Assembly: GCF_006345805.1 (NCBI RefSeq)
Contig: NC_043001.1
Location: forward strand, 39,866,001 to 39,930,000
Direction of reading: 5' to 3'
Length of the DNA stretch: 64,000 bases
Source: Octopus sinensis
Taxonomy: Eukaryota
Part shown: in pieces, positions 19,304 through 46,309 of the stretch
Position numbering within the stretch: the first letter of the stretch is position 1
Layout of the letters: each line of letters opens with the position of its first letter
Translations under genes and position numbers: made by a program
The notes under the pieces: generated by a model
Told to the model about the DNA's origin: nothing
Databases searched by the model: none
Seen by the model: the letters and a program-made list of their open reading frames with translations, nothing else

Positions 19304-19359
19304 CTCATTCCTTTGATTGTTGTTTTCATAAATGTTATTCAGGCTACCATTTACAGTGT
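19304..19359 (-). CDS. 56-bp exon C (phase 1 to 0): (D)TVNGSLNNIYENNNQRNE
   Basis: Acceptor ttttacttgacatgtctAG, donor GAG|gtaaat; carries an IYEN motif. Confidence 0.7.
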
Positions 19360-20143
19360 CTAGACATGTCAAGTAAAACAGTTGAGTATAGATATAGAAT
19401 ATATATAATATATACATTAATACAAAGCTTAACAAAAAGAAAAGCAATTACATAAACAGCATTAAAAATAGTGATTTTTTTCAGTGGATACAAATTAGAC
19501 AAAATAATTTAGTAGACCATTGATATTTATTGTGTTGATCATAGAAAAATTAAAGACAAAATTGACATCAATGGAATTTGAGCTCAGAATGCAGTGGGAC
19601 TAAATTTAATAATGCCAAGTATTTAATTTGGCATTCTACTATTTCTGTTACTCAAATATTTTATTGATATTTAAAGGTAGTAATATTAGATTAAGAGAAA
19701 CCATTCACTCCAATATTATTTTCATTCCAAAGGTATCTATAAGCAGGACTGATTGTGGGTATTCAACAACAATAGCTGATCAAGGTGTGAAATATTCGCC
19801 ATTGCAAACCAACTTTATACTTAGTGTCTCATGTCTAATAACTCAGAACTAATTTTATCATTTTTTTGTTTCTTTGTATAAATAAAGGTTACAAAAAATA
19901 TATTAATGAACTAGACTGTTAGTAAGGATTAATAAAAGTGCAAAAGCATAGTTATATATGAATGTTTGCAAGAAGTAGCTTATACAAGCAATGAAATTTT
20001 AATATTTTAAGGGACTTCTTTAAATACATGAATACATATGTTATTAAGCTGTATATTCTATTCAAACAAATAATGAGTCAAAATGTTTTCTAACTCTTGC
20101 TTTAATGAAAGTAATTTTAATAAAAGATTGCTTATATAGTTAA

Positions 20144-20185
20144 CATTAGGTCTCCTTGGAAGATTAACATAAGCAACATCCACGA
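20144..20185 (-). pseudogene. Type B microexon with mutated donor (TT): VDVAYVNLPRRPN
   Basis: 42 bp, homologous to intact B exons; AATG|ttaact in place of gtaagt. Confidence 0.75.
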
Positions 20186-20329
20186 CTTTAAAAAAAAGTA
20201 AAAAAAGAATAAATAACAATGGTTATAAATAACATTTAAAATATGTCAGTAGTGTGTTGACACTAATAATAAATACTAATAAAATAGGCTCAAATGCACA
20301 CACACATATGCACATGTTCCTATGGGGCA

Positions 20330-22000
20330 ACTTATTGAGGTCCATAGACCAAATTTATAGCTGGTGCAAAGTTACAACCAGACCTAGGGTGACATGGTGG
20401 TGGAACAATGAAGTAGAGTATAAGCATAAAGAAACAGGCCTGAAAGGAGTGGAAGAGTGGGAATAGCAGATAAGTATACAAGGTAGCTAGAAGGGAAGCT
20501 AAGTGATGAGTATATTTAGCTAGGGAAAAGTAGAAAGGAAGACATTTGCCAGTGTTCTGCACTGCAAGGGCAAGCGGTGTGTGGTGTTTTGGATTACTGG
20601 ACAGTGTCAGAGAAAATCATGATGTTGTAGGAGAGAAATGTGTCTGCATGGATGATGGTATACTTGCACTTAGAGAATTTTCAAAGAAAATGAAGTGTCA
20701 CTAAATGTGGAGAATGCCTGGGAGAATCTTCTTAAACTGAGTCCAACAGAGGGGCTAGCTATCTGAGTTGAAAGCAGCATGATAGGTAAAGCAATTAAGG
20801 ATATAAAAATAGGGAAAGCCCTTGGTCTATCAAGAATTATCACCAAGATGCTTAAGGTATCTGGTAGTGTGTGATATGGCCTAGTCACCAGTTTAGTTCA
20901 TCAGGTTGTCCAGGAAGGGGTCACACTCAATAACTGATGCAGCAGCATTACAATCAACTATTACAAAGGTAAATGTGATGCCTAGGAGATAAGTAATTAC
21001 AGAGGTATCAAATTACTGGAGCAGGAAATGAAAGTCACTGAGAATGTCATAGCTCAACTAATTAGAAAATAGTTGACATAGATGAGATACAAACGCTATC
21101 TTCTTAATAAGGCAACTGCAGGAGAAGCATTTAGTGAAAAATGGCCTTAGAGTTAACTTAGCAAAGACTAAAATATTAGTAACCAGGAGTGCAGATAAAT
21201 TACTAATATATTCTGGAAAATGGTCATACTGGATATGTATAAAAGGTGTAGTTAGAAATTTCCTATACTGTATCTACTGCAAGTTAGAAGTGCAGTGGAA
21301 TCAGAGGTAAGTTAACAGAGGAAGTAGTCTGTGTGTATGGCAGATGTGCAGGTACAATAAACACTAAGAATACACAGGAAATAGACTTCCTCAAATGCCC
21401 AGAGAGATCCTTAGAGATATCAAATAGTTTCTGTTACATAAATGACCAAATTGGTAGGAGACAAAAATGCTCTAAGTGTAGTTACTAGAATATGAACAAG
21501 CTGGATAAAGTCCAGAGTTATTACTGTTGTTGGTAACAAAGGGTTTTTCTCTGTGAGTGAAAGGCAGATTGTATAAAGCATTTGTATGGACAGCTATGCT
21601 ATATGGCAGTAAAACATGAGTTGTGACTAACAAGGACAGGTGAAGGCTTGAAAGAAATGAAGCAGGCAAACTCTGTTAGATGTGCAATGTCAGTGTGAGA
21701 TTCGACAAAGTGTAAATCTTTTAAGAGAAAAATTGTGTACAAGTGACATCAGATGTAGTGAAGAGAGAAGATTGTGCTGCTATGGTCATGGATGCATATG
21801 GATGAGGACAGCTGCATAAAGAAGGGCTGATCTCAAAATGCAGAGGGAACCTGTAGAAGGGGTAGACCCAGGAAGACATGAGACAAAATAGTGAGAAATA
21901 ATCTTCACCAGGGATGACAGAGGAGATCATAAAGGACAGAGACTATCAGTGATTTGCTGTGCTCAAGAAAACCTACCCAGCTAAGTAAAATTGAGGTCCT
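20330..22000 (+). mobile_element. Degenerate 5'-truncated RTE LINE
   Basis: RT-region homology to 27630-29800 and 50643-52000; followed by tail sequence to about 22660. Confidence 0.78.
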
Positions 22001-22862
22001 AAAGACATTTCTTTTATGTTTATGCCCCACCTCATGCACACAAACCATCATCCAACATTTCCCATTAACCCATCATCCACCACTCACCCCACCTATTGCA
22101 TTCCCTTCCACTCTCTCTCACATACCTACCTGCATGCAATATGTCTCCATTGAATTTCTTTCCCACAACATCCCCTGCCATACCCCCTCCCTCTAACTAT
22201 TCCCACTCATTACATCCCCTCTCCATCTACCACTCGCCTTTCACAATCTTGTGAACTCACTCATCTTCTCCAATCCACTCATCATCACATCTTCATCTTC
22301 TCTCTCTCCTTTCCCTCTCCACTCAAAAACTACCTGAGATAGTCACATTTCTTCTCTAATGCATGACTCATTTTTCTGTCCCTCAATAATCCTCCCACCC
22401 TCAGGTGAGAGCTCTTTTCTTGCTAGTTACTTGGTGACCTCACTGCTGCTGGTGCTATATAAAAGCAACCAGCACACTTTGTAAAGTAATTGGTGTTAGG
22501 AAGGCATCCAGCCATAGAAACCATGCTAAAGCAGACAGCAGGAATTGGTGCTACTTTTTGACTTGCCACTTCCTGTGGCACCGCCTAATCCATGCCAGCA
22601 TGGTAAACAGGTGCTAAACGATGTTGTTGTTGTTGCTGCTGCTGCTGATGATGATGATGATGATAGGAAGAGGTACAGCAATAGCAGGAAGAGGGTTGGG
22701 GAAGGGGAGGAAGAGGAATGGGTGGGAGGATGAGAAGGAAGATGGTTAGATGGGGGAGGGGAGACAGTGGAGGAGAAGAAGAGAGTGATATAGATTATAG
22801 CTGTTAGCTTTCTATTTTTACACTATTCTGAAGTCATGCTGTCCAATATTGTTTATACTTAC

Positions 22863-22922
22863 CAGGGTGTTTCATACACACATATTTCAACTCACTGACT
22901 TCAACATAATAATCTTCCACAG
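22863..22922 (-). CDS. Type A microexon: (x)VEDYYVEVSELKYVCMKHPG
   Basis: Acceptor tttaatttcttgaAG, donor CCTG|gtaagt; 60 bp, phase 1-1, open. Confidence 0.8.
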
Positions 22923-23222
22923 CTTCAAGAAATTAAATATAAAACAAGCATATTTATTGTTTGGGGAGAATGCTTTAACTATTTCTTTATTGCACAGAAA
23001 GTAACAAATATAATACATTTTATAGGTATATATGTATATAATGCTGCAGGGGAACTTGTTACCACTACAATATGTAGTGGCGGGAAGTCAACATGTTGTC
23101 CTGAGACTAACCTAAGAACTTTTATTTTTGGATATAATTGTGTTACTTAGATGTATTGGGTTATTCGCTTCGGCTATTTCCAGAGGCGCATGTGAGTATC
23201 TTACTTATATTCTCTTGTAAGC

Positions 23223-23280
23223 TCAACTGAAGACGAATGAACCCTTATGTGGTTAATTCCGAAATTGATTCAATATTGAG
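23223..23280 (+). ncRNA. Type I hammerhead ribozyme motif (one core-adjacent mismatch)
   Basis: CTCAA-CTGAAGA-cGAATGAACC-loop-GGTTAATTCc-GAAA-TTG-att-CAA-TA/TTGAG: stems I, II and III all pair; the G10.1 position is C. Confidence 0.72.
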
Positions 23281-23431
23281 ATAACGAAATTTAAATGTTC
23301 CAAAGGTTTAGTTGCCCGAATTTCAATTCAACTTTCTGTAGCAAGTAGATTAAATGTGGAATATCAGTATATTGGCTTTAGAATAACCTTCTTTAGCCCT
23401 TGCTTATAAGATATATATATATATAAATATA

Positions 23432-23996
23432 TTGGGTTGTCCAGAAAGTTCATGCCGATTTATAGTAGCTTACCTTTTGACTTATTTTAGAACATGGTTG
23501 AGTTCATAAAATAGGATTTGACTACACCTCCATTTAGAGCACAGTTTGAGCTATCTTTTCGTGGAAGAAGGTTTATGTTCCTATAACCCGTGTTAATTCT
23601 GTAACCCTTTAAAATGGAAGGTAAGAAAGTTCAGTTTCAACACTTGATGCTTTGGAAACCAGACAAAAATTGCTGCAGCTCGGCTGGGATGTGTTACCCC
23701 ACCCTCCATATTCACCAGATATTACTCTTTTGGATTTTCACTTATTCAGGTCTCTGCAGAATAGTCTTAATGGTAAAAATTTCAATTCCTTGGATGACAT
23801 AAAAAGATACCTTGATGAATTCTTTGCCATGAAACCACCTCAATTCTGGGAAGAGGGTATTTTCAAGTTAAAGGAAGATGGAGATGCATTGTGCAACAAA
23901 ATGGTTCATATTTGGTTGATTAAAAATGTAATGGCAAGTATTTATTGACCTTTTTCTTTCCTTTAAACATTGGCACAAACTTTCTGGACAACCCAA
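23432..23996 (+). mobile_element. Internally deleted mariner (DD34D family) with intact TIRs
   Basis: TIRs ttgggttgtccagaaagtt / aactttctggacaacccaa in TA context; 'HPPYSPDITLLDFHLFRSLQNSL'. Confidence 0.9.
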
Positions 23997-24991: not shown

Positions 24992-25033
24992 CATTAAGTT
25001 TCTTTGAAACATTAACATAAGCATTGTCCATGT
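24992..25033 (-). CDS. Type B microexon: (D)MDNAYVNVSKKLNG
   Basis: Acceptor ttaatttcttaaAG, donor AATG|gtaagt; 42 bp, phase 1-1. Confidence 0.8.
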
Positions 25034-25751
25034 CTTTAAGAAATTAAAAACAAAACACATATCATGGCTATATGCATAACAGGCACAGAACATATATGTA
25101 GTAATAATGGGTTGGGGATGTAGGTATATTTTTGGCAGAGAAATGAGTAGCTAAGGTAATCATGGTAGTTAAGGTGTGAAATAAGATTGTTAGCCTAAGA
25201 GTAATCTTTGCTAATGTTACAGTGTTACTTACCACTGCATATGCCCCACTGAACTGGCAGAGGATCAAAAGGACCAATACTATGAGGTTCTTTTGCAGAC
25301 TACCTCGATGATGAATAGCAATAACTTTATTATTATGGTTTCAGCAGATATGTTGGGCAGCACTCCAATGGATTTCATGGCATGCATGGTGGTTAGGGCT
25401 CCAGAAATGAGGAGGATAAAAAGCTGTTTGAGTTTTGAGGTGCAAATGGCTTGTTGCTCTGCAGCACTGCCCTCAGAAAACCTGCCAGCTACCTAATCAA
25501 TTATTAATCTATTTGGCACAGAAGCTAGATTGACTATATTTTTATTAGAAAGCGAGATAGGGAGATGCTTGTCCTTTCCTTGTGAGAAATATACACCTCA
25601 ACATAGGGCTATAGGTTAATGACTTCAGACTTAGGGTTAGATGGACTCAGAGATACAAACCAATCTGGAAAAGGAAGATATAGAAACTTAAGGGGATCCT
25701 TCAAACAGTTAGAGATTCTAACTGAAGCATTTGATGAGAAGGAGGAGGAGA

Positions 25752-27612
25752 CATATATATATATATATTTTAAACGGACTGGACGTAAACATCCAATTCA
25801 CGATGGAATATAGCCAGCAACAACTCCCCTTCCTCGATATCCTCATTAAGAAAGCTAATAATATAATAGAAACAGACATATATTATAAGCCTACAGACTC
25901 TAAGCAATATTTTCCATTCAATTCATGCCACCCCAGACACACCAGGATGAATATCCCCTTCAATCTAGCAAAAAGGATATGCACTATAGTCTCTAACGCA
26001 AACACCAGAGACACACGACTACAAGAACTAAAAGATACCCTTATCACCAGGAACTATCCACCTTCACTTATTGACAAGTGCATTCAACGTGCCCTTCAAC
26101 TTAACATCAAGGAACTGAGACATCCCAAATCAAAGAAAAACTTACAACCAAAAGCCTTACCATACATCTCCACACACAACCCTCTCAATAACGAAGCCTT
26201 CAGCACCATCCTCCACAACATACCCCTCCTAAAAAAAGACCACAGAATGAACACAATCCTCCAAACACACACGATCATAAAAAGCAAGAGACAGCCTAAA
26301 TCCATGAAAAGTCTCCTAACACAAGCCCGAATTCACTCTTCAACACAGAAGCCAACAGTAAAAAAATGTGGAAGACCCAATTGCGGGATATGCGACTATC
26401 TAATTGAGGGATCAGAGTTCTCCTTCAAACAGGGACAACGGTTTACAGTGAAAAGCAACTTCACATGTGCTTCGGAGAACCTAATATACTCACTAACCTG
26501 CTCCGGGTGTCAAGAGCAGTACATAGGCCAAACAAAAAATAGTTTGCGTAAACGAATGGCCCTGCACAGATCCCAGATAAAAATTCCCCAAAACAGAAAA
26601 ATAGCTTTTAGCCAACACATAGACACTTGCGCCAACAAAAAACACCAAGCTTCAGGATTTTCCCCCTCTACCAATTTAGGGACGATACAACCTCGAGACA
26701 ACGAATAAGTAAAGAAACTCTCTTTATTACAAAATACAGGCCACTTCTTAACGGGTCTATGACAAACAATTAATATACCTCAACTTTAGAATAAAAGAAA
26801 TATACACACACAAATATTACATTCCAAAGAATCCATTACTAATCAGTCCCAATCACAGCTATACTCCATAACATGCCAACTTCAAGTCATACAACACCTC
26901 ACTACTTTCACCCATTCATATTCTCCCTTCTCTGTTTTTTTCTTCTTCTTCCTCTTCTTCTTCATCATCATTATCATCATCATCGTCGTCATCATCATCA
27001 CCACCATCATCATCATCATCATCTTCTCCTTCTCCTTCTTCTTCTTCTTCTCCATCATCATCATCATCAACATCGTCATCTTCTTCTTCTTCATCATCAT
27101 CATCAACATCATCTTCTTCTTCTTCTTCTTCTTCTTCTACTTCTCCACCTTCTAACCCTTAACTTTGTCACTAATGTTTTTTAGTATAACACCTACGCAA
27201 ATTCCATAAACAAGCCTTTCAATAGAAATATTCTCCTGAATTGAACTGCGACTGCTAGCCGCCACTGACCATTCAAAATACGACCATCAGGGCACTCCCA
27301 GATTTTCCCACCCCCTTTCCTCATCAGCCTTCTTCCTCTACTACCCTACCAAGAACTCACAACGACCTCCAACACACAAGTGCAAACAAGGGAGTCAGAG
27401 AAAGGCAGAATGCCACTTATATCTGAACACTACTATAGAAATATTCCTTTAAAAAAACTTTTCTTCTAATTTTTCTAAATTTAATTATTTAATCGTTACA
27501 GTTGAAAAGGTCTCAAAATGACCGAAATCAGTACTGAAATGTTCACTATAAAATTATTTTAGCATTTTCTATTTTTGACTTGTTTTTTCATATATATATA
27601 TATATATATATA
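25752..27612 (+). mobile_element. 5'-truncated Penelope-like element (C-terminal RT + GIY-YIG, ORF to 26708)
   Basis: 'IQFTMEYSQQQLPFLDILI', 'YKPTDSKQY', 'CGRPNCGIC', 'YSLTCSGCQEQYIGQTKNSLRKRM'; flanked by (TA)n and a repeated 'acata'. Confidence 0.9.
26935..27150. repeat. (CTT)n/(CAT)n compound microsatellite
   Basis: Directly visible. Confidence 0.95.
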
Positions 27613-30057: not shown

Positions 30058-30116
<59 letters not shown>

Positions 30117-30140
30117 GTGTGTGTGCGTGTGTATTATGTA

Positions 30141-30173
<33 letters not shown>

Positions 30174-30489
30174 GCGAGTGTGTCTTTGTGTTTGTATTTG
30201 TCTCCCCCACTGCTTGACAACTGGTATTGGTTTGTTTACATCCCTGTAGCATAACAGTTCAGCAAAAGAAACAGATTTAATAAATTCTAGACTTAAAAAT
30301 GAAAGGAAGTACTAAGATTAATTCATCTGACTCAAACCATACTATGTTGCCACTGCATGGCCACAATCCAATGACTGAAACAAATAAAAAACAATAAAAG
30401 AAGTGATATATATTATAATTCTTAGCTTTCTGTTCATATTTTAGACAATCTTTAAGATCATGCTGCATATTATCATTACTGATTCAACT

Positions 30490-30548
30490 TAATGTGTTTC
30501 ATGCATAAATATTTGGGCTCAGTAATTTCAAAATATGATCTTCCACAA
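30490..30548 (-). pseudogene. Disrupted type A microexon (1-bp deletion, donor lost)
   Basis: Acceptor intact; GTGGAAGATCATATTTTGAAATTACTGAGCCCAAATATTTATGCATGAAACAC aligns to type A; no GT donor. Confidence 0.75.
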
Positions 30549-30654
30549 CTTCAAGAAATTAAATATAAAAAATGGGAATATTTATTCAGTTTTATATTTA
30601 AGAGATGAGGAATTATGTCCTCATCTTGTTTGTTGTTAACATGCCATATGCCTG

Positions 30655-30895
30655 TGGGCATATGGTGTAGTGGTTAAGAGCATGGGCTACTAACCCCAAG
30701 ATTTTGAGTTCAATTCCAGGCAGTGACCTGAATAATAATAATAATAACAACAACAACATCGAAAAATACCTTAGGAATGAGAACCCATGTTCGAAATTTG
30801 CCCAAGACACCTGATGAGGCTGGAGGGTATATCAGCCAAAAATGTTGTGATAACAATAAACAAGATGAGGACAAATATCTGTCAAATGTAAATAA
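30655..30895 (+). mobile_element. tRNA-like SINE head joined to a hammerhead-bearing pseudo-LTR arm
   Basis: 'ggtgtagtggttaagagc...gagttcaattccagg' A/B boxes; cacCTGATGAGGCTG...CAGCCaaaa (GAAA mutated); homologous to the 11421-11652 arms. Confidence 0.6.
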
Positions 30896-32931: not shown

Positions 32932-34207
32932 TACGAGGGACGTTCAATAAGTAATGCCTCTGACCCACTTGCAATTGTTTGATCTAGCTGAAATTTTGCA
33001 TGTGCAATCATTTATATCTATATATCTGTGCAATCATTTATATGGTTTCTGATTTACAGGTGTTTGAACCGAGTCAAGTGTGAAATGGAGCCTGTTGAGT
33101 GTCGAGCAGTGATCCGGTTTTTGTATTTGAAAGGACGCACACCACGGGAGACTTTTGATGAAATGAAAGTAACTTATGGTGATGATGCCCCATCATATGA
33201 CCTTGTAAAACGCTGGCATCGTGAATTCAAACATGGTCGGAACTCTGTGGAAACAGCTCCCAGATCTGGTCGCCCCTTCTGCCATTGATGAGGCATCTGT
33301 CCGTCAAGTTGAGGCTGCCATTTTGGAAGATTGACGCATAATTATTCGCCAAATAGCCCATGAGGTCAAGTTTAGTACCGGGTCTGTGGAAACTATCATT
33401 CATGACCATTTGCATATGCAAAAGGTGTCTGCCAGATGGATTCCCAGGTTGCTCACGCCTTTCCAGAAGCAAGAACGCGTCGAGTGCTCGAGGGTGAATT
33501 TGGAGATGTGCCAAGAAGATGAGTCAAAATTTTTCAAAAGACTGATTACACAGGATGAAACCTGGGTCCATCACGATGATCCAGAGACCAAAGCCCAGTC
33601 AATGCAGTGGAAGCACCGTGACTCACCCCCTCCAAAGAAGGCAAGGGTGCAGCCCTCCGCTGGCAAGGTCATGCTCACAGTCTTCTGGGACCAGGACGGA
33701 GTAGTGATGACAGATTTCCTGGCAAAGGGTACCACAATTACAGGAGCCTATTATGCTTCACTTTTGAGGAAATTAAGAGAAGCTATCAAAATCAAGAGGC
33801 AGGGCAAGATCAGCAAAGCATCCTCCTCCTGCAGGACAACGCTCCGGTCCACAACTCGCTTGTCGCCAGATCAGAAGCACAGGCGTATGGCTATGAACTC
33901 CTCCCCCATCCCCTACTTTCCTGACCTTGCACCCTCTGATTTTCACCTCTTCCCAGTCATGAAGTTGTTTTTGAAAGGAAAGCGTTTCCCAGATGATGCA
34001 GCCTTGATTTCTGAAGTCACGTTCAGGTTGGAGGACCAAGCTGGGGTCTTCTACAAAAACGGTCTCCAGAGCTGCATCAAGCAATGGGAGAAATGCGTAA
34101 CTCTGGGTGGTTCCTATGTAGAAAAAGACTAATAGCTGTGCCAAGTTTCGTTGCTCTACTGCTATGGGAAGTGGGTCAGGGGCATTACTTATTGAACGCC
34201 CCTCGTA
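32932..34207 (+). mobile_element. Full-length mariner (DD34D) with a frameshifted transposase
   Basis: About 38-bp TIRs tacgagggacgttcaataagtaatgcc / ggcattacttattgaacgcccctcgta; WIPRLL, QDETWVHH and YFPDLAPSDFHLF motifs. Confidence 0.93.
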
Positions 34208-34340: not shown

Positions 34341-34382
34341 CATCAGGTTTCTTTGGAATGTTAGCATAAATAGCGTCCAAAT
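34341..34382 (-). CDS. Type B microexon: (D)LDAIYANIPKKPDG
   Basis: Acceptor ttatatttcttaaAG, donor GATG|gtaagt; 42 bp. Confidence 0.82.
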
Positions 34383-34618
34383 CTTTAAGAAATATAAAGG
34401 AAAATAAATAACATAGCTGTAAATAATATTTATGATATGTTAGTAGTGCTCTAATACTATCAGAATAAATATTAAAGGCATACACTGAAACAATGCATGT
34501 GCACACACACACATACACACACACACATCAACAGAAAAAAGTTAGTGTTAGCATTCTATTTAAGTTTTGCACTATTCTGAAGACATGCTGTGTACTTCCA
34601 ATATTGATTCATACTCAC

Positions 34619-34678
34619 CAGGTTGTTTCATGCATACATATTTGGGCTCACTATCTTCAGCATGTTCATCTTCCACAA
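34619..34678 (-). CDS. Type A microexon: (x)VEDEHAEDSEPKYVCMKQPG (copy 1 of 3 identical)
   Basis: Acceptor aaatttcttgaAG, donor CCTG|gtgagt; 60 bp. Confidence 0.8.
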
Positions 34679-35090
34679 CTTCAAGAAATTTAATATAAAA
34701 TGGGCTTATTTATTTTTAGGATATTTTAAGTATTTCAATATTGCACAGAAAGTAGCAAAAATAAAATGTATATTTTGTATATAAACATGAATTTGAGAAA
34801 GAAAATATGTTTGAAATACAACCAAACTGAATGTAATGTATAAGTTCTTCATCTTCTCATAGATGTATTGAAAAACAAAAATATTGCCACACAAATTCAT
34901 TTCTTATGAAGAAACAGAAAGATCAATTTCGATAGATAAGACATATCAAATTTAGTGTTTGGAGAGAAAGTTCCTCCATAAAGTAAGACACTAAAAATTT
35001 TTTCTATCCACAAAATTAGCATTTTGTTATAGAAATTACATGAAAGAAGTACATACTGGAATATTCAAGAGATTGAAAAATGAACACAAA

Positions 35091-35900
35091 TCAAGAGTGC
35101 AGAGAACAGGGATGGACTATTGAGTATTACCACCTGACAGTGGAGGCAAGAGGTTTCATTGAAAGGAAAATGATGACGTCATTTAACAGAGGTTTGCATT
35201 TTCGAGCTCAGAGCTGAGAAAAGTAATAAGGAGGATACAAGAGGCAGTCGAAAAAGCCAGCTTCTATGTATGGCTGAAGTGAGAAGACCTAAAATGGCTT
35301 GAAAACCATAACATACCAACTGGGGAATAGCATTGCTAGGTGAGGCTGGCTGACACTTAAGCAGCATCACTGATTGACAGTTGGGCCAAGGTAATGATCT
35401 CATTCTTTGCATGCCCTCCCTCTGGTTTGAAGACATGTACCACCAAACAGCTGGTCAGATCTGACTGCTGGAACTGAAACTAACACAACACTGTTCGAAG
35501 GTAGATTTAAAGAGGGCATAGGCTAAAATTACATGCCCTTCCCCTCCATTGGTTAGTGGAAGCTTAGACAGTGTCATGCGGCAGTTAGCTGGTGCTGGCC
35601 GCTGGAGCCTACCGGTGAGTATTTGATGGGAAATTTGGCAGGATAGTCAGTTGCCCACTGACATTCATTGACACTGCATTGAAGAAACCAAAGAACAAAA
35701 GAAAAAAGGAGAAAGAAGAAACGCACTCGACACCAGAGCTGAAGACACCTTTAAGAGATGAGGGGCCCACCACATCAAAAAACGGTTGAGGAGTAGGGAC
35801 CGAAACTGGACGTGGTTTCTCCTGATGTCTTTAGCCACTGGATCCTATAAAGAAGCTGTTGAGATGGTGAACCACAAAATGTGGTTGGAATTCCTAACAG
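35091..35900 (+). mobile_element. 3' fragment of an RLE-type (HERO-like) non-LTR retrotransposon; duplicate at about 40136-40940
   Basis: 'ECREQGWPVEYYHLTVEARGF...RKVIRRIQEAVEKASFYVWLK*' resembles the RLE ORF C-terminus; empty site in the paralogous intron at about 43285-43310. Confidence 0.6.
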
Positions 35901-36078
35901 CTAAAATATGCAAGTAATGAGCAGATACTACTACAATGAATACCAAGATACACTCAAACACTCACATATGAACAAAAATAAAAAGAGTGCTAATTCAAAT
36001 TATGGTTGTTAGCTTTCTAATCATGATTTAGACTATTCTAAAGTCATGTTGTGTGCTATCAATGTCTGTTATATTTTC

Positions 36079-36138
36079 CAGGCAGTTTTGGGCATATATT
36101 TTGGTGCTCACAAACTTCAAAATATTGATGCTCCACAC
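36079..36138 (-). pseudogene. Type A microexon with GA donor: VEHQYFEVCEHQNICPKLPG
   Basis: Open 60 bp, acceptor intact, CCTG|gaaaat. Confidence 0.72.
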
Positions 36139-36689
36139 CTTCATGAAATTAGATTAAAAACAGGTTGTTTATTGTTTGGAAAGGATGTTTTAAATATGTT
36201 ATTGTTACACTGTAAGTCATAAAGCAAATGACAAAATATACTCATCATCATCATCATCATCGTTTACCGTTCATGTTCCAAGCTAACATTAGTGGGATGG
36301 TATCACAAAAGCCAGTCAGGCTGACGCCTGCACTAGACTTCTGTGATTGTTTTGACAGGATTTTTATAGCTGGATGCCCTTCCTAACACTAAGTTCACTC
36401 AGCGGAGTGGACTTAGTGCTTTTTATGTGGCAAAAGCACAGGCAAAGTGAGTAGTTCTTTTATGTGGCACAAGCACAGTTGAGGATAGTTTTGACAAGGT
36501 TTTTACAGCTGGATGCCCTTCCAAATACCAACCACTTTACAGTGTGGACTGGGTGCTTTTAAGTGGCACCTGCACTGACAGAGTTACCAAGTACTTGCAA
36601 GACAAAAACTTTTAAGAGGGAGAGAGGCTTTGGAGGAGGTGATGATCAAAACGTTATAGCGAGACAGATACAGGTGTCTTGCTGTAGAA

Positions 36690-39620
36690 TAGGGTTTCTC
36701 AACAGGAGCCATATGACCCTCTAGGGGGCCATGAAACATTTCTTGTAGGCCACAAAGCTAAGTTTGAAAAATAGGGAGCCACAGGGGTCTACGGGGGGTG
36801 GGGGCACAGAAATTTTGGGGATCGTAAATTATTAACATGTAGGTATGTATTTTTATTTGTAAAATGCATGTTACACATATACATATAAGAAACACGTGTA
36901 TATGCAGTTATAATTTTGATGGATCATCCTTATGTACTAATTTTATATTACACACATATATGTACCTAAAGAACACATGTTAGAATATTAGATTTTAAGT
37001 GTTGTATGTTTGGTTCATAAGATGAACAGTTACATATCATTGCATCATACCAAATTGCTCCAAAATTTTAAAGCTGCAAAACATACATATATAACGGACA
37101 GCACAGAAGGCAAAGTCGCAGTTATTAATCAAAACTCCACTTCAACATTTTGGATGAAGCACTCCGTCGGTTACGACGATGAGGGTTCCGGTTGATCCGA
37201 ATCAACGGAACAGCCTGCTCGTGAAATTAACGTGTAAGTGGCTGAGCACTCCACAGACACGTGTACCCTTAACGTAGTTCTCAGGGATATTCAGCGTGAC
37301 ACAGAGAGTGACAAGGCCGGCCCTTTGAAATACAGGTACAACAGAAACAGGAAGTAATAGTGAGAGAAAGTTGTGGTGAAAGAGTACAGCAGGGATCACC
37401 ACCATCCCTGCCGGAGCCTCGTGGAGCTTTAGGTGTTTTCGCTCAATAAACACTCACAACGCCTGGTCTGGGAATCGAAACCGCGATCCTATGACCGTGA
37501 GTCCGCTACCCTAACCACTGGGCCATTGCCCCTCCACACTTCAACATTATCGACAACATGGAAAATCCATTCAATCAACAACGTCCATGCTAACTGGTTA
37601 ACATTTACACAAGTCTCTTTAAGATTCATTTTTCTTTTTTGTTTTGTCAAATTATACCACTTCTTTCTCTCTCTCTTCTTATCTCATCTTACTTTTGTTC
37701 TTGATTCTGTACATTCTTGTTTAATTATATTTTTCTGCATCGTTAGTGTGCAAGTATCTACTCCTTTTTACTTCATTTTACCTAAGTATTTATAAGTTAC
37801 TTTGATTATCATAAATATGCCATCTAGATCTATAGTGAAAGAGGCGAGGGTGGAAACGTCAATCTACCAAGTTAAATCATTGATCAAGCATTCAAACTGA
37901 ACCCAAGCAGTCAGGAAAACTGTTTCTTCACATATGAGTATAGGATTTATTTTCAAAAAACCTATAATTTGAGAAGTATCCAAACTAAGATGGGGAATCA
38001 AGAGGGAGGTGAGAGGCTGAGGATACCCCGAAAACAAACAAACAAACAATTCATTAGAAAACTAGATAAAATCATTCTTATATGCCTTTTTATACAACTA
38101 TTAGATTATTAATCAATTTAATGATTCAATAATTAGTCACTGAATAGTATTATATACTTAATTGAATTAGAGTAAAATTTAATATTGAACTATGTTTAAT
38201 AGACTATAACAAAATATATTATAAAATCATTTTTTTTTAAAAAGAAAATACATTTTCAATATAACTCTTTTAGGCAATTCGAGTTTGATTCAGCAATAAA
38301 TCAGCCCTATTTTTTCCATGAGCTTACCAGCTCACTTGCTTTATCGATCACTTTTATAATTTAGTTTCTTTTCATCAAATTAATTTTCTTTCTGGATTGT
38401 CAACTGAAAAGGGAAAGATGAATTTTGTCTTGTTATTTTTATCTTTTTATAAGCATAAATATTAATCTGTTTTTCTTGATTATTAAAGCGTTTGATTTAG
38501 TTAACTGCATAATATATTGACTTTATAAACTTGGTTTTAGAACTAATTTTATTCTTGGTTAAAAAGGTATATTGGTTTACCTTACTTTGTATTCACCCCT
38601 GACGAAAACGCTTGAAACTAACCTCTTGTTTATTCAACATTTTTGAAAATATTTGTTTATTATTTCAGATAAACATGGCAAGTGCACCTAAAAAAAGTGT
38701 AGATAATATTCTGTCGAATATCTTGCTTATGGATTCATTAAATCTTCACAAAATTCTACCATACCTAATGTGTCTGCTATTCAAGACCTTGTTCTCAAAT
38801 GAAAATATGTGTCCCTGCAAACTAAAAGAACATCTGGAGACTGCACATAGAGATAAGAAATACAAGCCACTAGATTTCTTCAAAAAGTTATATGATGAGT
38901 TTCAAGGAAGGATGACAGTGGATCAAATGTTCACTCAAAAAGCAGCAAAAGTAGACAAAGAAATGTTGGCTTCTTACAAGATAGCAAATTTAATTGCAAA
39001 AGGTGGTAAGCCATTTTTGATCATGCCTGCAGTGGCTGTAGTGCTTTCAACAGTCATGTATCATAGTCCACAAGAGGTTACAAGTGTTATTCCTCTGAGC
39101 AACTCATCAGTATCATGATGGATTGATGAAATGACAGCTGATGTTGAAAGCTAATTAGTTTCAAAACTTAGGGTAAATGAGTTCTCACTTCAAACAGATA
39201 AATCAACTCTACCTGATAATTCTGTTTTTTAAATGGCATTTGTTAGGTTTCTTCATGTTAATGATATATGTCAAGAATTGCTTTTATCTGTTTTGAAAGG
39301 AAATCCATCTTCAAAACACTTGAGGCCTATTTCGAAGAGAACAACATTCCATTGAAGAACATTGTGGCTTGTACAACAGATGGCATTGCTACTATGATCA
39401 GAAGATATTGGTGATTCAGTGCTTACTTAAAATAGTTGTGCTTTTTGTGCACTGTGTTCATTGACAGCATCTTGTTGCCAAACACATAGGAAACATTTGA
39501 ATGATGCACTTATAAATGTTATCAAAGCTGTCAACTTGATAAAAAAGTATGCACTGCAAAATCGCCTCTTTAAGCAATTATATGAAAAAAATTACGAGGA
39601 ATTTGAATGACTTGCGTTGT
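36690..39620 (+). mobile_element. hAT (Buster/Charlie-like) transposon, 3'-truncated; deleted duplicate at 41734-42740
   Basis: Terminus (c/t)agggtttctcaac preceded by ctgTAgag (nnnTAnnn Buster-type site); 'FSNENMCPCKLKEHLETAH', 'SYKIANLIAKGGKPF', 'IPLSNSSV', 'FSLQTDKST'. Confidence 0.82.
37150..37536 (-). mobile_element. tRNA-derived SINE with 12-bp TSD
   Basis: TSD cacttcaacatt at 37138-37149 and 37537-37548; single unoccupied copy at 42178-42189. Confidence 0.9.
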
Positions 39621-39665
39621 ATTCTGAAGGCATGCTGTGTTTTTCCAATGTTGATTCATACTCAC

Positions 39666-39725
39666 CAGGTTGTTTCATGCATACATATTTGGGCTCACTA
39701 TCTTCAGCATGTTCATCTTCCACAA
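39666..39725 (-). CDS. Type A microexon VEDEHAEDSEPKYVCMKQPG (copy 2)
   Basis: Identical to 34619-34678; AG/GT intact. Confidence 0.8.
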
Positions 39726-41123
39726 CTTCAAGAAATTTAATATAAAATGGGTTTATTTATTTTTAGGATATTTTAAGTATTTCAATATTGCACAGAAAGT
39801 AGCAAAAATAAAATGTATATTTTGTATATAAACATGTATTGAGAAAGAAAATATGTTTGAAATACAAACAAACTGAATGTAATGTATAAGTTCTTCATCT
39901 TCTCATAGATGTATTGGAAAACAAAAATATTGCCACACAAATTCATTTCTTATGAAGAAACAGAAAGATCAATTTCGATAGATATGACATATCAAATTTA
40001 GTGTTTGGAGAGAAAGTTCCCCATAAAGTAAGACACTAAAAATTTTTTCTATCCACAAAATTAGCATTTTGTTATAGAAATTACATGAAAGAAGTGCATA
40101 CTGGAATATTCAAGAGATTGAAAAATGAACACAAAACAAGAGTGCAGAGAACAGGGATGGCCTGTTGAGTATTACCACCTGACAGTGGAGGCAAGAGGTT
40201 TCATTGAAAGGAAAATGATGACGTTATTTAACAGAAGGTTTGAATTTTCGAGCTCAGAGCTGAGAAAAGTAATAAGGAGGATACAAGAGGCAGTCGAAAA
40301 AGCCAGCTTCTATGTATGGCTGAAGTGAAAAGACCTAAAATGGCTTGAAAACCATAACATGCCAACTGGGGAATAGCATTGCTAGGTGAGGCTGGCTGAC
40401 ACTTAAGCAGCATCACTGATTGACAGTTGGGCCAAGGTAATGATCTCATTCTTTGCATGCCCTCCCTCTGGTTTGAAGACATGTACCACCAAACAGCTGG
40501 TCAGATCTGGCTGCTGGAACTGAAACTAACACGACACTGTTCGAAGGCAAATTTAAAGAGGGCATGGGCTAAAATTACATGCCCTTCCCCTCCATTGGTT
40601 AGTTGAAGCTTAGACAGTGTCATGCGGCAGTTAGCTGGTGCTGGCCGCTGGAGCCTACCGGTGAGTATTTGATGGGAAATTTGGCAGGATGGTCAGTTGC
40701 CCACTGACATTCGTTGATACTGCATTGAAGAAACCAAAGAACAAAAGAAAAAAGGAGAAAGAAGAAACGCACTCGACACCAGAGCTGAAGACACCTTTAA
40801 GAGACGAGGGACCCACCACATCAAAAACGGTTGAGGAGTAGGGACCGAAACTGGATGTGGTTTCTCCTGATGTCTTTAGCCACTGGATCCTATAAAGGAG
40901 CTGTTGAGATGGTGAACCACAAAATGTGGTTGGAATTCCTAACAGCTAAAATATGCAAGTAATGAGCAGATACTACTACAATGAATACCAAGATACACTC
41001 AAACACTCACATATGAACAAAAATAAAAAGAGTGCTAATTCAAATTATGGTTGTTAGCTTTCTAATCATGATTTAGACTATTCTAAAGTCATGTTGTGTG
41101 CTATCAATGTCTGTTATATTTTC

Positions 41124-41183
41124 CAGGCAGTTTTGGGCATATATTTTGGTGCTCACAAATATCAAAATATTGATGCTCCACAC
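41124..41183 (-). pseudogene. Type A microexon with GA donor: VEHQYFDICEHQNICPKLPG
   Basis: Duplicate of 36079-36138. Confidence 0.72.
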
Positions 41184-42790
41184 CTTTATGAAATTAGATT
41201 AAAAACAGGTTGTTTATTGTTTGGAAAGGATGTTTTAAATATGTTATTGTTACACTGTAAGTCATAAAGCAAATGACAAAATATACTCATCATCATCATC
41301 ATCATCGTTTACCGTTCATGTTCCAAGCTAACATTAGTGGGATGGTATCACAAAAGCCAGTCAGGCTGACACCTGCACTAGACTTCTGTGATTGTTTTGA
41401 CAGGATTTTTATAGCTGGATGCCCTTCCTAACACTAAGTCCACTCAGCGGAGTGGACTTAGTGCTTTTTATGTGGCAAAAGCACAGGCAAAGTGAGTAGT
41501 GCTTTTATGTGGCACAAGCACAGTTGAGGATAGTTTTGGCAAGGTTTTTACAGCTGGATGCCCTTCCAAATACCAACCACTTTACAGTGTGGACTGGGTG
41601 CTTTTAAGTGGCACCTGCACTGACAGAGTTACCAAGTACTTGCAAGACAAAAACTTTTAAGAGGGAGAGAGGCTTTGGAGGGAGTGATGATCAAAAGTTA
41701 TAGCGAGACAGATACAGGTGTCTTGCTGTAGAGCAGGGTTTCTCAACAGGAGCCATATGACCCTCTAGGGGCCATGAAACATTTCTTGTAGGCCACAAAG
41801 CTAAGTTTGAAAAATAGGGAGCCACAGGGGTCTGCGAGGGTGGGGGCACAGAAATTTTGGGGATCGTAAATTATTAACATGTAGGTATGTATTTTTATTT
41901 GTAAAATGCATGTTATACATATACATATAAGAAACACATGTATATGCAGTTATAATTTTGATGAATCATCCTTATGTACTAATTTTATATTACACACATA
42001 TATGTACCTAAAGAGCACATGTTAGAATATTAGATTTTGAGTGTTGTATGTTTGGTTCATAAGATGAACAGTTACATCATTGCATCACACCAAATTGCTC
42101 CAAAATTTTAAAGCTGCAAGACATACATATATAATGGACAGCACAGAAGGCAAAGTCGCAGTTATTAATCAAAACTCCACTTCAACATTATCGACAACAT
42201 GGAAAATCCATCCAATCAACAACGTCCATGCTAACTGGTTAACATTTACACAAGTCTCTTTAAGATTCACTTTTCTTTCTGGATTGTCAAATTATACCAC
42301 TTCTTTCTCTCTCTCTTCTTATCTCATCTTACTTTTGTTCTTGATTCTGTACTTTCTTGTTTAATTATATTTTTCTGCATCGTTAGTGTGCAAGTATCTA
42401 CTCCTTTTTACTTCATTTTACCTAAGTATTTATAAGTTACTTTGATTATCATAAATATTCCATCTAGATCTATAGTGAAAGAGGCGAGGGATGGAAAGGT
42501 CAATCTACCAAGTTAAATCATGATCAGAAGATATTGGGGATTCAGTGCTTACTTAAAATAGTTGTGCTTTTTGTGCACTGTGTTCATTGACAGCATCTGG
42601 TTGCCAAACACATAGGAAACATTTGAATGATGCACTTATAAATGTTATCAAAGCTGTCAACTTGATAAAAAAGTATGCACTGCAAAATCGCCTCTTTAAG
42701 CAATTATATGAAAAAAATTACAGGAATTTGAACGACTTGCGTTGTATTCTGAAGGCATGCTGTGTTTTTCCAATGTTGATTCATACTCAC

Positions 42791-42850
42791 CAGGTTGTTT
42801 CATGCATACATATTTGGGCTCACTATCTTCAGCATGTTCATCTTCCACAA
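42791..42850 (-). CDS. Type A microexon VEDEHAEDSEPKYVCMKQPG (copy 3)
   Basis: AG/GT intact. Confidence 0.8.
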
Positions 42851-43490
42851 CTTCAAGAAATTTAAAATAAAATGGGTGTATTTATTGTTAGGACAGGATA
42901 TTTTAAGTATTTCAATATTATACAGAAAGTAGCAAAAACATATTATAATCTATATTTTGTATATAAACATTTGTATATAAACATGTATAGAGAAAGAAAA
43001 TATATTTGAAATGCAGCCAAACTGAATGTAATGTATAAGCTCTTCATCTTCTCAATGATGTATTGAAAAACAGAAAAATATTGCCTCATAAATTCATTTC
43101 TTATGAAGAAACAGAAAGATCAGTTTTGATAGATATGGTATATCAAATTTAGTGTTTGGAGAGAAGGTTCTTCCATAAAATGAGACACTCAAAATTCTTT
43201 TCTATCTGCAAAATGCTATTATTTTTTTATAGAAATTACATAAAAGTAGTGCATATTGAGAACTTTAAGGGATTAAAAAATGAACACAAAACATTGATAT
43301 AACATCTAAAATATGCTGGTAGTGAGCATATACTATTACAATGAATACCATTAACATACACTCAAACACTCACATATATACAAATGTAAAAAGAGAGGAG
43401 TTAATTCAAATTATGGTTGTTAGATTTCTAATCATGATTTAGACTATATCTAAAGTCATGCTATACACTATCAATGTCTGTTATACTTAC

Positions 43491-43550
43491 CAGGAGGTTC
43501 TGGGCATATATTTTGGTGCTCACAAACTTCAAAATATTGATGCTCCACAC
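43491..43550 (-). CDS. Type A microexon: (x)VEHQYFEVCEHQNICPEPPG
   Basis: Acceptor ctaatttcatgaAG, donor CCTG|gtaagt. Confidence 0.8.
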
Positions 43551-44073
43551 CTTCATGAAATTAGATTAAAAATGGGTTGTTTATTGTTTGGAAAGGGTGT
43601 TTTAAATATGTTATTGTTACACTGTAAGTCATAAAGCTAATGTCAAAATATATTGTAATACATATTTTATATATAAACATATATTAGGTAAAAAAAATTA
43701 TTTGAAATCCAGCCAAACTGAGTGTACAGTATGAGTCTTCATCCCCTTCTCTCATTGATGTATTCAGAAAAGGAAAAGAATTGTCTAATAAATTCATTTG
43801 GTATGAAAAAGTAAGGAGAAATAAAGTCTAATTTTATTTAATATGGCAAATTATGAAAATATGTGTATACACTGGATTATTAATATGGATTAATATGTGT
43901 AAGAAGTCAAGTTCTTTATATATGCAATGGGGTTTTCACATTTTCAAACTTTTCTAATTAAAAACATATGTATGTTATTAAGCAGTATATTCTACTCAAA
44001 GAAAGGATAAGCTAAGATATTTTTTAACTCTTGCTTTAATGATTATAATTTTATTGAATTGCCTATATGCTAA

Positions 44074-44110
44074 CAATCAAATTTCTTAGAAATAAGCACC
44101 ATCTTTGTTT
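44074..44110 (-). pseudogene. Deleted type B microexon remnant
   Basis: 'gatggtgcttat...ttctaagaaatttgat' sits in B-exon flanking context; splice sites degraded. Confidence 0.55.
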
Positions 44111-44353
44111 TCAAGAAAATCATTTTAAATATAAATAATGTGACAATAAATAACATTTAAAATGTGTTGCTAGTGTGCTGATACTACTAAAATAAATATT
44201 AATGAATGCACAAGCACATGTACACAGACATACACACATACACACAATGATAGGGTATATTTAGATTGTTATAAAATGTAGTCATTAGCTTTCTGTTCAA
44301 GTTTATACTATTTTGGGATTATGTCATGTGCTATCAATATTGATTATACTTAC

Positions 44354-44413
44354 CAGGGAGTTCTAGGCACATATCTTGGAGTTCACTAACTTCAATATAA
44401 TGATCATCCACAG
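44354..44413 (-). CDS. Type A microexon: (x)VDDHYIEVSELQDMCLELPG
   Basis: Acceptor ctaatgttttgaAG, donor CCTG|gtaagt. Confidence 0.8.
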
Positions 44414-44684
44414 CTTCAAAACATTAGATAAAGAGGGACATATTTATAGCGTGAAGAGAATGTATTAAATATTTTCATGTTGTACAAAAGGTAGAAAAAT
44501 AACAATATAATATATTGTAGGTATATTTTGATATATAAACATGCATTTAGAAACAAAGATTATTATTTGAAATCCATCAAACTGAACATAAAGTATAAGT
44601 TCTTCATCTTTGTATTGATGTATTTAAAATAAAGAATAGTATTACCTAATAAATTCATTTGATATAAGTAAGTAAAGAAGAAAT

Positions 44685-45097
44685 CGTTGTTGTGGCCAAT
44701 GCCAGGGCCACCTGACTGGCGTCTGTGCCAGTGGCACATAAAAAGCACCATTTGAACCATAGCCGATGCCAGTGCCACCTGACTGGCTCCTGTGCCAGTG
44801 GTATAGGGAAAGCATCATTTGAGTGTGTTCAATGCCAGTGCCACCTGACTGGCTCCTGTGCCAGTGGTATAGGGAAAGCATCATTTGAGTGTGTTCAATG
44901 CCAGTGCTACCTGACTGGCCCCCATGCCAGTGGCACGTAAAAAACACCACTACGCTCTTGGAGTGGTTGGCATTAAAAAGGGCATCCAGCTGTAGAAACC
45001 TGGACAGAACAGATTGGAGCCTGGTGCAGCCTCCTGGCTTGCTAGTCTTCAGTCAAACCATCCAACCCATGCCAGCATAGAAAGCAGACATTAAAAA

Positions 45098-45130
<33 letters not shown>

Positions 45131-45202
45131 GGTGGTGGTGGTGGTGATGATGATGATGATGATGATGAAGAGAGAGAGAGGGAGAGAGAGAGAGAGAGAG
45201 AG

Positions 45203-45275
<73 letters not shown>
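44685..45275 (+). mobile_element. RTE-tailed SINE with an internal 66-bp tandem unit, followed by (GAT/GGT)n(GA)n(GAAA)n
   Basis: Unit starts at 44766, 44832 and 44898; standard tail at 45060-45110. Confidence 0.8.
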
Positions 45276-45277
<2 letters not shown>

Positions 45278-46267
45278 CTATATTTGGTAAATATGGCATT
45301 TCAGAGTTAGTGCATGGAGAGAAAGTTCTTCAGTAAAGCAGCAATAAAAATTATATTCAACACGGAAAATGCTAATTTTCATACAGAAATTATATAACAG
45401 TGGTATTTACAGAGGGCTCAAAGGTGAAATTTCATTCAAAGAAATTTGAACACAGAACATAGTATGACTAAATTTAATATTGATTTCAAATTTTGACAGA
45501 GAACCATCAATTTCAGAGAGGGGATAAGTTGATTGCATTGACCACCCACTGTTCAACTCGTACTTATTTTATCAACCTTAAGAGAATGAAAGGCAAAGTC
45601 AACCTCAGTGGAATTTGAACTCAGACCGTAAAGTTGGACGAAATGCTACTAAGCATTTTGCCTGGCATGCTAACCATTCTACCACCTTGCTGTCTATAGA
45701 CTAAATTTAATATTACTAAGTATTTCATATGTCACTATTTCTGTTACATATTTCACTGATATTTTAAAATAATCATGTTATCATTAAGAGAAGCTTGTGC
45801 AATAAAATATTTTCTAAGATTATTTTCATGCTAGTGGTATCCAAAAGCAGGACTTATTGTGGTTACCTCAACAAAAACAGTTCATTTCAGTGTATAATAT
45901 TCCCCATTGAAAATCTCTTCTAAACTATTTGTCTCATCTCCAGGCAAATGTGTAGTAAATTCATTACTAGTTATATTATTATTTGGTTTATTTGTATAAA
46001 TAAAACTTACAAAATACATTTATGAATTGGATTATCAGTAAAGATTAATAAAGGTGCAAAAGTATGGAGTTACATAAAAAAGTTTACAAGACATCTCTTA
46101 TACATGCAATGGAAATTTAACATTTTGATGGTTTTATTTATATATATGCATACATATTTTATTACACTGTACATTCTACTCAAAAAAGAAAAAAGAATGA
46201 GCCAAAGTATTTGATAACATATGCTTTAATGAACAGAAGTTCATCCAGGAAATGTCTATATGCTCAC

Positions 46268-46309
46268 CTTCAGGTTTCTTTGAAAGATTATCATAAGCAC
46301 CATCCAGGA
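46268..46309 (-). CDS. Type B microexon: (x)LDGAYDNLSKKPEG
   Basis: Acceptor ctaattcttaaAG, donor GAAG|gtgagc. Confidence 0.8.

Follow-up and report, generated by a model that had tools for sequence, protein, structure and literature searches.

The minus strand of the window analysed here, a stretch of 64,000 nucleotides (nt) of Octopus sinensis DNA (contig NC_043001.1, positions 39,866,001 to 39,930,000), carries the 3' half of the gene LOC115212119, the product of which is annotated as 'uncharacterized protein'; in assembly GCA_006345805.1 the locus lies on chromosome CM016863.1 at ~39.87-39.95 Mb. As judged from its sequence, this product is a type I single-pass membrane receptor of the immunoglobulin (Ig) superfamily, and its tail is encoded by a duplicating array of symmetric microexons with tyrosine motifs. 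An earlier note on the same DNA, made from the letters alone, had read these microexons as a cassette library of SH2-docking motifs. A tail that docks SH2 proteins and whose cassette content is set by splicing is, in our judgement, the best explanation of the locus and a probable one, although far from secure.

The product that was spliced by hand from the genomic sequence proved to be 100% identical to XP_036359229.1 (LOC115212119 isoform X1) in an exhaustive HMMER search, and the microexons are hence annotated coding exons that encode the tail of this receptor. Word-indexed homologue searches missed the identical protein though it was present, and negative results of that search type do not signify absence for this gene. 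Protein XP_036359229.1 runs from Ig-like domains through a transmembrane exon and ten cassettes in genomic order to exon C and a terminal exon, the cassettes being exactly the ten splice-intact copies of the array. I-set and Ig_3 domains scored above the Pfam curated cut-offs in four proteins of the family (P0001, P0002, P0003 and P0012), and the nearest solved structures of the ectodomain belong to contactin, ICAM-1 and CEACAM, which are generic adhesion proteins from the Ig superfamily. The exons coding for the Ig domains are of ordinary size (~260-310 nt), and microexons are found only in the presumed cytoplasmic tail.

The transmembrane exon, identical to residues 208-242 of XP_036359229.1, codes for a hydrophobic helix followed by a basic stretch of the stop-transfer type, KFHKIR. 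By the positive-inside rule and with a type I layout, the tail, which comprises 222 amino acids (aa) with 12 Tyr and 23% Asp+Glu, would lie in the cytoplasm. In the AlphaFold model a helix was predicted at residues 214-249 and the tail was left without secondary structure; the model is poor as a whole (predicted local distance difference test, pLDDT, 37) and therefore lends just weak support to a disordered tail. The full-length products of Octopus bimaculoides and Octopus vulgaris begin with the hydrophobic N-terminus MELKLLYWKHLLTVQCLCVCLQ, judged by eye to be a signal peptide. The O. sinensis model has no N-terminal signal peptide and is probably incomplete at this end; the O. vulgaris product (887 aa) and the O. 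bimaculoides products (986-1020 aa) contain more Ig domains.

A systematic scan combined with hand curation identified 17 copies of two microexon types on the minus strand, eleven of type A (60 nt) and six of type B (42 nt), which are listed in Table 1. A repeat finder had detected families of 57-220-nt repeats, which turn out, when read on the minus strand, to be short open frames with AG and GT at their borders. All full-length copies have AAG as acceptor, G as the last base, phase 1 at either end and a length divisible by 3. Ten of the 17 copies are splice-intact, with the donors GTAAGT or GTGAGT (GTGAGC at B 46309), and the remaining seven are dead, three through loss of the donor (41183, 36138 and 20185) and four through a frameshift, an internal deletion or truncation by a short interspersed nuclear element (SINE) (30548, 44108, 53835 and 53275). 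Phase 1 is found at the end of the transmembrane exon and at the start of exon C (56 nt), which itself ends in phase 0, so that any subset of the symmetric phase-1 cassettes between them, even none, keeps the frame. The consensus of the B module is MDxxYxN(V/I)SKKP and that of the A module (V)EDxYxE(V)SEPKY(V/L)CMKxP. Each module forms its own phase 1-1 microexon also in the O. bimaculoides orthologue and in the paralogue LOC106874069, with splice signals of the same type.

All peptides quoted in the earlier note for the two module types and for exon C were recovered at their positions on the minus strand, along with the exchange of Tyr for Cys in the B copy at 53543 and of the first Tyr for His, with YxxM kept, in the A copy at 34619. 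The array reaches beyond the range 19304-46309 that had been assigned to it, with the transmembrane exon at 62315-62207, a B copy at 53584 and the terminal exon at 15102-15019. One of the quoted B peptides, AYVNL, is present in the DNA (20185), but its donor has changed from GT to TT and the copy stands outside the gene model.

Table 1. Copies of the microexon array and its flanking exons, ordered 5' to 3' along the gene.
Feature	Peptide	Positions in window	Strand	Remarks
Transmembrane exon	(E)ITEVFLGTIIGCTVGSVLLLITLGLVAYKFHKIR	62207..62315	-	Phase 1-1; acceptor ttttcag, donor gttggt, last base G
Type A relic		53823..53835	-	Acceptor and first ~11 nt left, body deleted
Type B cassette	DMDIACMNGSEKTD	53543..53584	-	Tyr to Cys; splice sites intact; in NCBI model
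Type A relic	GEDHYAVV...	53230..53275	-	Truncated by SINE insertion; no donor
Type B cassette	VLDGAYDNLSKKPE	46268..46309	-	YxN; nucleotide-identical in O. bimaculoides
Type A cassette	AVDDHYIEVSELQDMCLELP	44354..44413	-	YIEV; first Tyr kept, second is Asp
Type B relic		44075..44108	-	8-nt deletion, in-frame stop, dead donor
Type A cassette	GVEHQYFEVCEHQNICPEPP	43491..43550	-	YFEV
Type A cassette	VVEDEHAEDSEPKYVCMKQP	42791..42850	-	Copy 1 of 3 identical; first Tyr to His, KYVCM kept
Type A pseudo-exon	GVEHQYFDICEHQNICPKLP	41124..41183	-	YF(E/D)(V/I) type; donor lost (GGAAAA); outside model
Type A cassette	VVEDEHAEDSEPKYVCMKQP	39666..39725	-	Copy 2 of 3; first Tyr to His, KYVCM kept
Type A pseudo-exon	GVEHQYFEVCEHQNICPKLP	36079..36138	-	YF(E/D)(V/I) type; donor lost
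Type A cassette	VVEDEHAEDSEPKYVCMKQP	34619..34678	-	Copy 3 of 3; first Tyr to His, KYVCM kept
Type B cassette	DLDAIYANIPKKPD	34341..34382	-	YxN
Type A pseudo-exon		30489..30548	-	Frameshift, no donor; ancestral reading had both Tyr
Type B cassette	DMDNAYVNVSKKLN	24992..25033	-	YVNV
Type A cassette	AVEDYYVEVSELKYVCMKHP	22863..22922	-	YYVEV and KYVCM; sole intact copy with both Tyr motifs
Type B pseudo-exon	VVDVAYVNLPRRPN	20144..20185	-	AYVNL; donor TT for GT; outside model
Exon C	DTVNGSLNNIYENNNQRNE	19304..19359	-	Constitutive; phase 1 to 0; closes array
Candidate alternative terminal exon	IEGDGYNSTLNTSY, then stop	16982..17026	-	Intact; unannotated in O. sinensis
Annotated terminal coding exon	ITSEGPCSSDEQKEPRTCNIITPSRTE, then stop	15019..15102	-	ITSEG...

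The tyrosine motifs of the assembled 222-aa O. sinensis tail were counted and compared with composition-matched shuffles of the same tail. YxN was observed four times (0.8 in shuffles), YxxM four times (0.43) and YxxΦ, defined as Y-x-x-[LMVIF], ten times among the 12 Tyr (2.6), all three excesses being inflated by duplication. The motif scan thereby bears out the YxN and YxxM sites that the earlier note had expected. pY-x-N is the consensus of Grb2-type SH2 domains and pY-x-x-M that of the p85-type (PI3K) SH2 domains. The proposed ITIM-like reading of Y-x-x-V/I/L, by contrast, found no support, as the tail yielded no match to the strict immunoreceptor tyrosine-based inhibitory motif (ITIM, [SIVL]xYxx[IVL]; 0.46 in shuffles), the switch motif (ITSM; 0.05) or the activation motif (ITAM, [DE]xxYxx[LI]-x6-12-Yxx[LI]; 0.01), and membership in these classes was rejected. 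The residue at -2 of the tail Tyr is G, D, H, A, N or P. Elsewhere in the family, one paralogue (P0016) ends in TIYADL, and in the longest O. bimaculoides isoform an ITAM pattern (D..Y..I-x10-Y..L) spans two adjacent B cassettes (74554-74592 and 79348-79386 of the O. bimaculoides region L003). The orthologue of the second cassette of this pair is the copy at 20185, the donor of which is lost in O. sinensis and O. vulgaris.

Comparison of the modules across the whole family revealed which positions are best kept. Among 51 distinct B modules these are N8 (47), D3 (46), Y6 (43), S10 (42) and P13 (42), with Ser in place of the +2 Asn in four modules; among 44 distinct A modules they are E8 (42), S10 (39), Y14 (39), Q5 (34) and P12 (32), with Met or Leu at position 17, that is at +3 of the second Tyr, in 38 (M in 29, L in 9). 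Conservation well above the module average thus marks the cores Y-x-N (B) and Y-x-x-M/L (A), both of which lie inside longer conserved modules, and the Tyr of the YxxV motif of A is dispensable; where this first Tyr is replaced, D, H, C or N stands in its place, each a single-base neighbour of TAT. The conservation of Tyr that would be expected of docking sites accordingly holds for the Tyr of B and for the second of the two in A but fails for the first A Tyr, and some residues other than Tyr do equally well or better.

The conservation outside the tyrosines deserves description in its own right. In B modules the residues at -3 (D), +4 (S) and +7 (P) of the Tyr are as strongly conserved as the Tyr (e.g., at 24992-25033), and the N-x-S of this module resembles a glycosylation sequon, though the tail should be cytoplasmic. 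In A modules the stretch E-x-S-E-P ahead of the second Tyr is conserved. Such strong conservation of residues other than Tyr suggests that the modules are read as longer peptides.

Constraint on the cassettes was assessed by comparison between species. O. sinensis and O. vulgaris are 99% identical, and their comparison (2 exon changes vs 3.4 expected) is powerless because the divergence amounts to only 0.44%. Between O. sinensis and O. bimaculoides, the introns of which diverge by ~5-10%, the eight comparable orthologous cassettes contain zero indels, whereas many occur in the flanks. Using the proportions of synonymous (pS) and nonsynonymous (pN) differences, pS in these cassettes was 0.104, matching the intron divergence, and pN was 0.037, giving a pN/pS of 0.36 (Fisher p=0.034). 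The substitution rate in exons was lower than in flanks (12/302 vs 167/2752), but this difference was not significant (p=0.16). The Tyr motifs are unchanged in seven of seven comparable cases, which at an overall amino-acid divergence of ~7% is not significant taken alone. The pN/pS of the orthologous cassettes shows purifying selection between species.

Evidence of cassette choice comes from annotation. For LOC106869178, the orthologue in O. bimaculoides, at least 15 distinct products are annotated (NCBI X1-X7 along with UniProt and earlier models). Their ectodomain and their transmembrane segment are the same, and the only difference lies in which 14-aa and 20-aa cassettes are present, each isoform containing 4-11 of them. 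Annotated isoforms of the same cassette-skipping kind, together with alternative terminal exons, exist for three paralogues. Several cassettes are used together, which indicates cassette skipping and not mutually exclusive choice. The junction residue in the O. bimaculoides isoforms is V or I depending on the preceding exon, as phase-1 splicing predicts given that the last base of some A exons in this species is A, not G.

According to the explanation that we favour, the annotated cassette subsets of O. bimaculoides and of the paralogues would give isoforms differing in the number and kind of Tyr motifs. Once phosphorylated on tyrosine, the modules might recruit SH2 proteins, Grb2/Drk-type at YxN and p85-type at YxxM, and cassette content would set the valency of signalling. 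Docking of SH2 proteins by the modules is plausible from their motifs; phosphorylation of the Tyr, SH2 recruitment and regulated cassette content are steps that we infer.

Several observations weigh against this explanation. The excess of motifs stems partly from duplication, since KYVCM occurs four times in the tail and three of these are identical recent copies, which are not independent evidence. The first A Tyr is found in just 23 of the 44 modules and is thus lost in about half of them, D3, S10 and P13 in B and E8 and S10 in A are kept as well as or better than Tyr, and some B modules of paralogues read YVSV, without the Asn that a Grb2-type SH2 domain needs. Among the paralogous copies in the window, exon identity (0.75 for A and 0.70 for B) is close to that of the introns (0.67-0.73 and 0.67-0.69, respectively), and pN/pS is 0.82 (A) and 1.95 (B), which implies that most positions are free or diversifying after duplication. 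Moreover, the O. sinensis isoforms X1 and X2 differ at the N-terminus alone and both hold all ten cassettes, and the O. vulgaris model likewise includes all ten. The exon choice envisaged by the earlier note therefore finds its counterpart in the annotated isoforms of the sister species and the paralogues only, while both isoforms of O. sinensis itself include every intact cassette.

The inclusion of all ten cassettes in every annotated product of O. sinensis and O. vulgaris, along with the strong donors (GTAAGT/GTGAGT), would equally be expected if the cassettes were constitutive and built a long multi-Tyr scaffold tail of the LAT type, the O. bimaculoides isoforms being splicing noise or annotation artefacts. 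We consider this rather unlikely, as many isoforms of the orthologue that skip cassettes appear in two annotation sets independent of each other (UniProt/2015 models and NCBI Gnomon), such isoforms recur in three paralogues, and all cassettes have the weak AAG acceptor that is typical of regulated exons. The tyrosines also allow a different use, in which the modules are YxxΦ sorting signals read unphosphorylated by AP-2 or related adaptors and cassette number tunes endocytosis or trafficking. The fit of ten of the 12 tail Tyr to this pattern against 2.6 in shuffles and the conserved hydrophobic residue at +3 (V/I at position 9 of B, M/L at position 17 of A) are in its favour. The pattern is, however, very permissive, a tail with ten or more sorting signals in redundancy would be out of the ordinary, and YxxΦ has no need of the +2 Asn of B (47 of 51 modules), which is defining for Grb2-type SH2 ligands; sorting as the main role is accordingly doubtful in our view, although it can coexist with SH2 docking on one motif.

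The array might finally be a neutral by-product, an intronic unit that duplicates and happens to contain splice sites and an open frame, with functionless peptides. Equal identities of exons and introns among paralogous copies, a pN/pS of about 1 or above within the array and the death of seven of 17 copies agree with such an origin. They are opposed by the between-species pN/pS of 0.36 with pS matching intron divergence, by the lack of indels in orthologous cassettes, by the persistence of modules and key residues across paralogues whose ectodomains are only ~50-60% identical, and by the retention of exon length and phase in a distant paralogue. Constraint between species and persistence across the family render a purely neutral array unlikely, and we give it very little credence. 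Tyrosine modules that dock SH2 proteins in a number adjusted by splicing hence remain our preferred explanation.

The layout of the array indicates how it has grown and decayed. The founding unit is an exon A followed by an exon B ~250-300 bp further on, and several such A-B units have been stretched by transposon insertions. A recent ~5-kb tandem segmental duplication, present also in O. vulgaris, is represented by full copies at 34573-37149 and 39620-42189, which are 97-99% identical, and by a partial third copy at 42745-43850. Each duplicate contains one live and one donor-less A exon, and the duplication yielded the three identical A exons with KYVCM only as well as two donor-less copies of the YFEV exon. 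The array gains copies by unit and segmental duplication and loses them by donor loss, frameshift and transposon insertion.

Individual copies differ in their state between species. The O. vulgaris counterpart of the pseudo-exon at 41183 has a GT donor, GTAAAA (GGTAAAAA; ~76891 of the O. vulgaris region L002); with the donor dead in O. sinensis and a GT in O. vulgaris, exon death or revival differs between very close species. The O. bimaculoides orthologue of the B copy at 20185 is intact and annotated, and the O. vulgaris counterpart of the A cassette at 22922 reads KYACM. The Tyr-less B cassette with Cys is kept in O. sinensis and O. bimaculoides with usable splice sites in both; in O. bimaculoides (55700-55738 of L003) it has a GC donor and occurs in UniProt isoforms only, being absent from NCBI X1-X7. 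The candidate terminal exon at 16982-17026 is orthologous to an annotated O. bimaculoides terminal exon (IEGDGYYSTLNTPD, then stop). The annotated terminal exon (15102-15019) had been listed as a candidate independently of the NCBI model; its O. bimaculoides counterpart is frameshifted, and similar endings occur in paralogues.

The window as a whole is AT-rich eukaryotic DNA with microsatellites, SINE-like repeats, transposon open reading frames and retroelements, and on these grounds a prokaryotic or viral source was rejected. The introns hold transposon remnants on the plus strand (22-1713, 25731-26708, 5711-6650 and 33386-34132), recognized by Pfam as two Penelope-like elements (reverse transcriptase, GIY-YIG), a reverse transcriptase of the long interspersed nuclear element (LINE) type and a mariner transposase. 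Tandem repeats of 63-66 bp with a common motif (GGCACGTAAAAAGCACCATC...) were found at 44697-44933, 52172-52449 and 63525-63705; they probably represent repeats inside a SINE-like element that is also the source of scattered (CAT)n-tailed copies.

The exhaustive HMMER search and a further homologue search, within the content of the databases, returned homologues from Octopus only (O. sinensis, O. vulgaris and O. bimaculoides), all named 'uncharacterized' or 'Ig-like domain-containing'. Three further hits of the exhaustive search (P0004, P0006 and P0009) were discarded as unrelated repeat proteins from metagenomes, and a search of the available literature found no paper mentioning any of six LOC identifiers of the family. 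Members share a multi-Ig ectodomain, a similar transmembrane segment and a tail of A-like and B-like modules, of which the tail of LOC115212116 contains up to ~30. In O. bimaculoides two members lie within 0.6 Mb on one chromosome. In the 76704-nt region that encloses the window (L001), the NCBI range of LOC115212116 (P0002, 1220 aa) spans the entire LOC115212119 locus, and over its first ~320 residues the product has the sequence of P0012, the O. vulgaris model of the window's gene; either the 5' Ig exons are common to tandem paralogues or one of the models is chimeric.

Octopus is known for unusual expansions of cell-surface recognition genes. We suggest very tentatively, and regard as improbable so far, that this cluster confined to Octopus encodes immune-type or recognition receptors, with ectodomains diversified by gene duplication and tails combined from Tyr microexons into a signalling code for each isoform. 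If true, the code would include emergent motifs from adjacent cassettes, such as the ITAM-like B pair of O. bimaculoides, and the system would parallel, by means of splicing, the families of paired activating and inhibitory receptors in vertebrates and the Botryllus fester co-receptor (FcoR). Should cassette choice be regulated, it would offer a simple genetic means to determine how many docking sites a receptor bears and of which type. Furthermore, live, recently killed and long-dead copies stand side by side, which makes the locus a natural system for the birth, duplication and loss of short linear motifs.

At the level of single motifs, the octopus cores YVNV, YANI, YDNL and YVCM are identical to those of established SH2 docking sites (YVNV of Shc, LAT and Met) and have acidic residues upstream, and the +2 Asn is the most conserved position of B; the assignment is based on known SH2 specificities. 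In contrast to these sites, the octopus modules conserve further residues that lie outside the consensus motifs, namely those at -3 (D), +4 (S) and +7 (P) in B and E/S/P before the A Tyr. The variable EPIYA repeats of CagA, with which the earlier note had compared the array, may serve as an analogy only.

Tandem symmetric microexons whose skipping gives in-frame variants are shared with the schistosome micro-exon genes (MEGs). MEG exons are mostly 6-36 nt, make up the bulk of a protein that is secreted and are not known to be derived from two module types by duplication. A gene of this type was ruled out, as the octopus product is a membrane receptor with ordinary Ig exons and microexons in the tail only. 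Dscam1 likewise has tandemly duplicated exon variants within one Ig-superfamily receptor gene. In Dscam clusters the variants exclude one another and code for Ig or transmembrane parts, and docking/selector RNA pairing is used. When conserved intronic elements were searched for such pairing with the rest of the pre-mRNA, only scattered 10-12-mers were obtained, among them one at 59276 complementary to A acceptors, a yield at chance level for the ~1000 k-mers tested. With 4-11 cassettes per isoform and RNA complementarity at chance level, a mutually exclusive cluster of the Dscam type was rejected. MEGs and Dscam clusters thus share with the octopus locus just the idea of tandem alternative exons.

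The closest functional precedents for the octopus tail are PECAM-1 and FcoR. In PECAM-1 (CD31) a 19-amino-acid cytoplasmic exon (exon 14) with a functional Tyr is present in some isoforms only (PMC2132561). As at the octopus locus, an Ig-superfamily type I receptor has an optional tail exon that bears Tyr. The distinct tail exons of PECAM-1 are each present once, and the Tyr motifs of this receptor are ITIMs. The octopus locus, in contrast, amplifies two exon types to 17 copies and never presents a strict ITIM, and beyond generic Ig domains no sequence relationship between the two receptors is detectable. In FcoR of Botryllus schlosseri, tail splicing changes the content of ITIM, hemITAM (a half-ITAM) and 'tyrosine core' (PMC11507803). 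Like the octopus genes, it belongs to an invertebrate multigene receptor family with splice-variable Tyr motifs in the tail; unlike them, it uses intron retention, new stop codons and canonical ITIM/hemITAM in place of duplicated symmetric microexons, and there is no homology. Splicing of single tail exons with Tyr motifs is known already from PECAM-1 and FcoR, and in Octopus it appears scaled up to a duplicating library of interchangeable modules.

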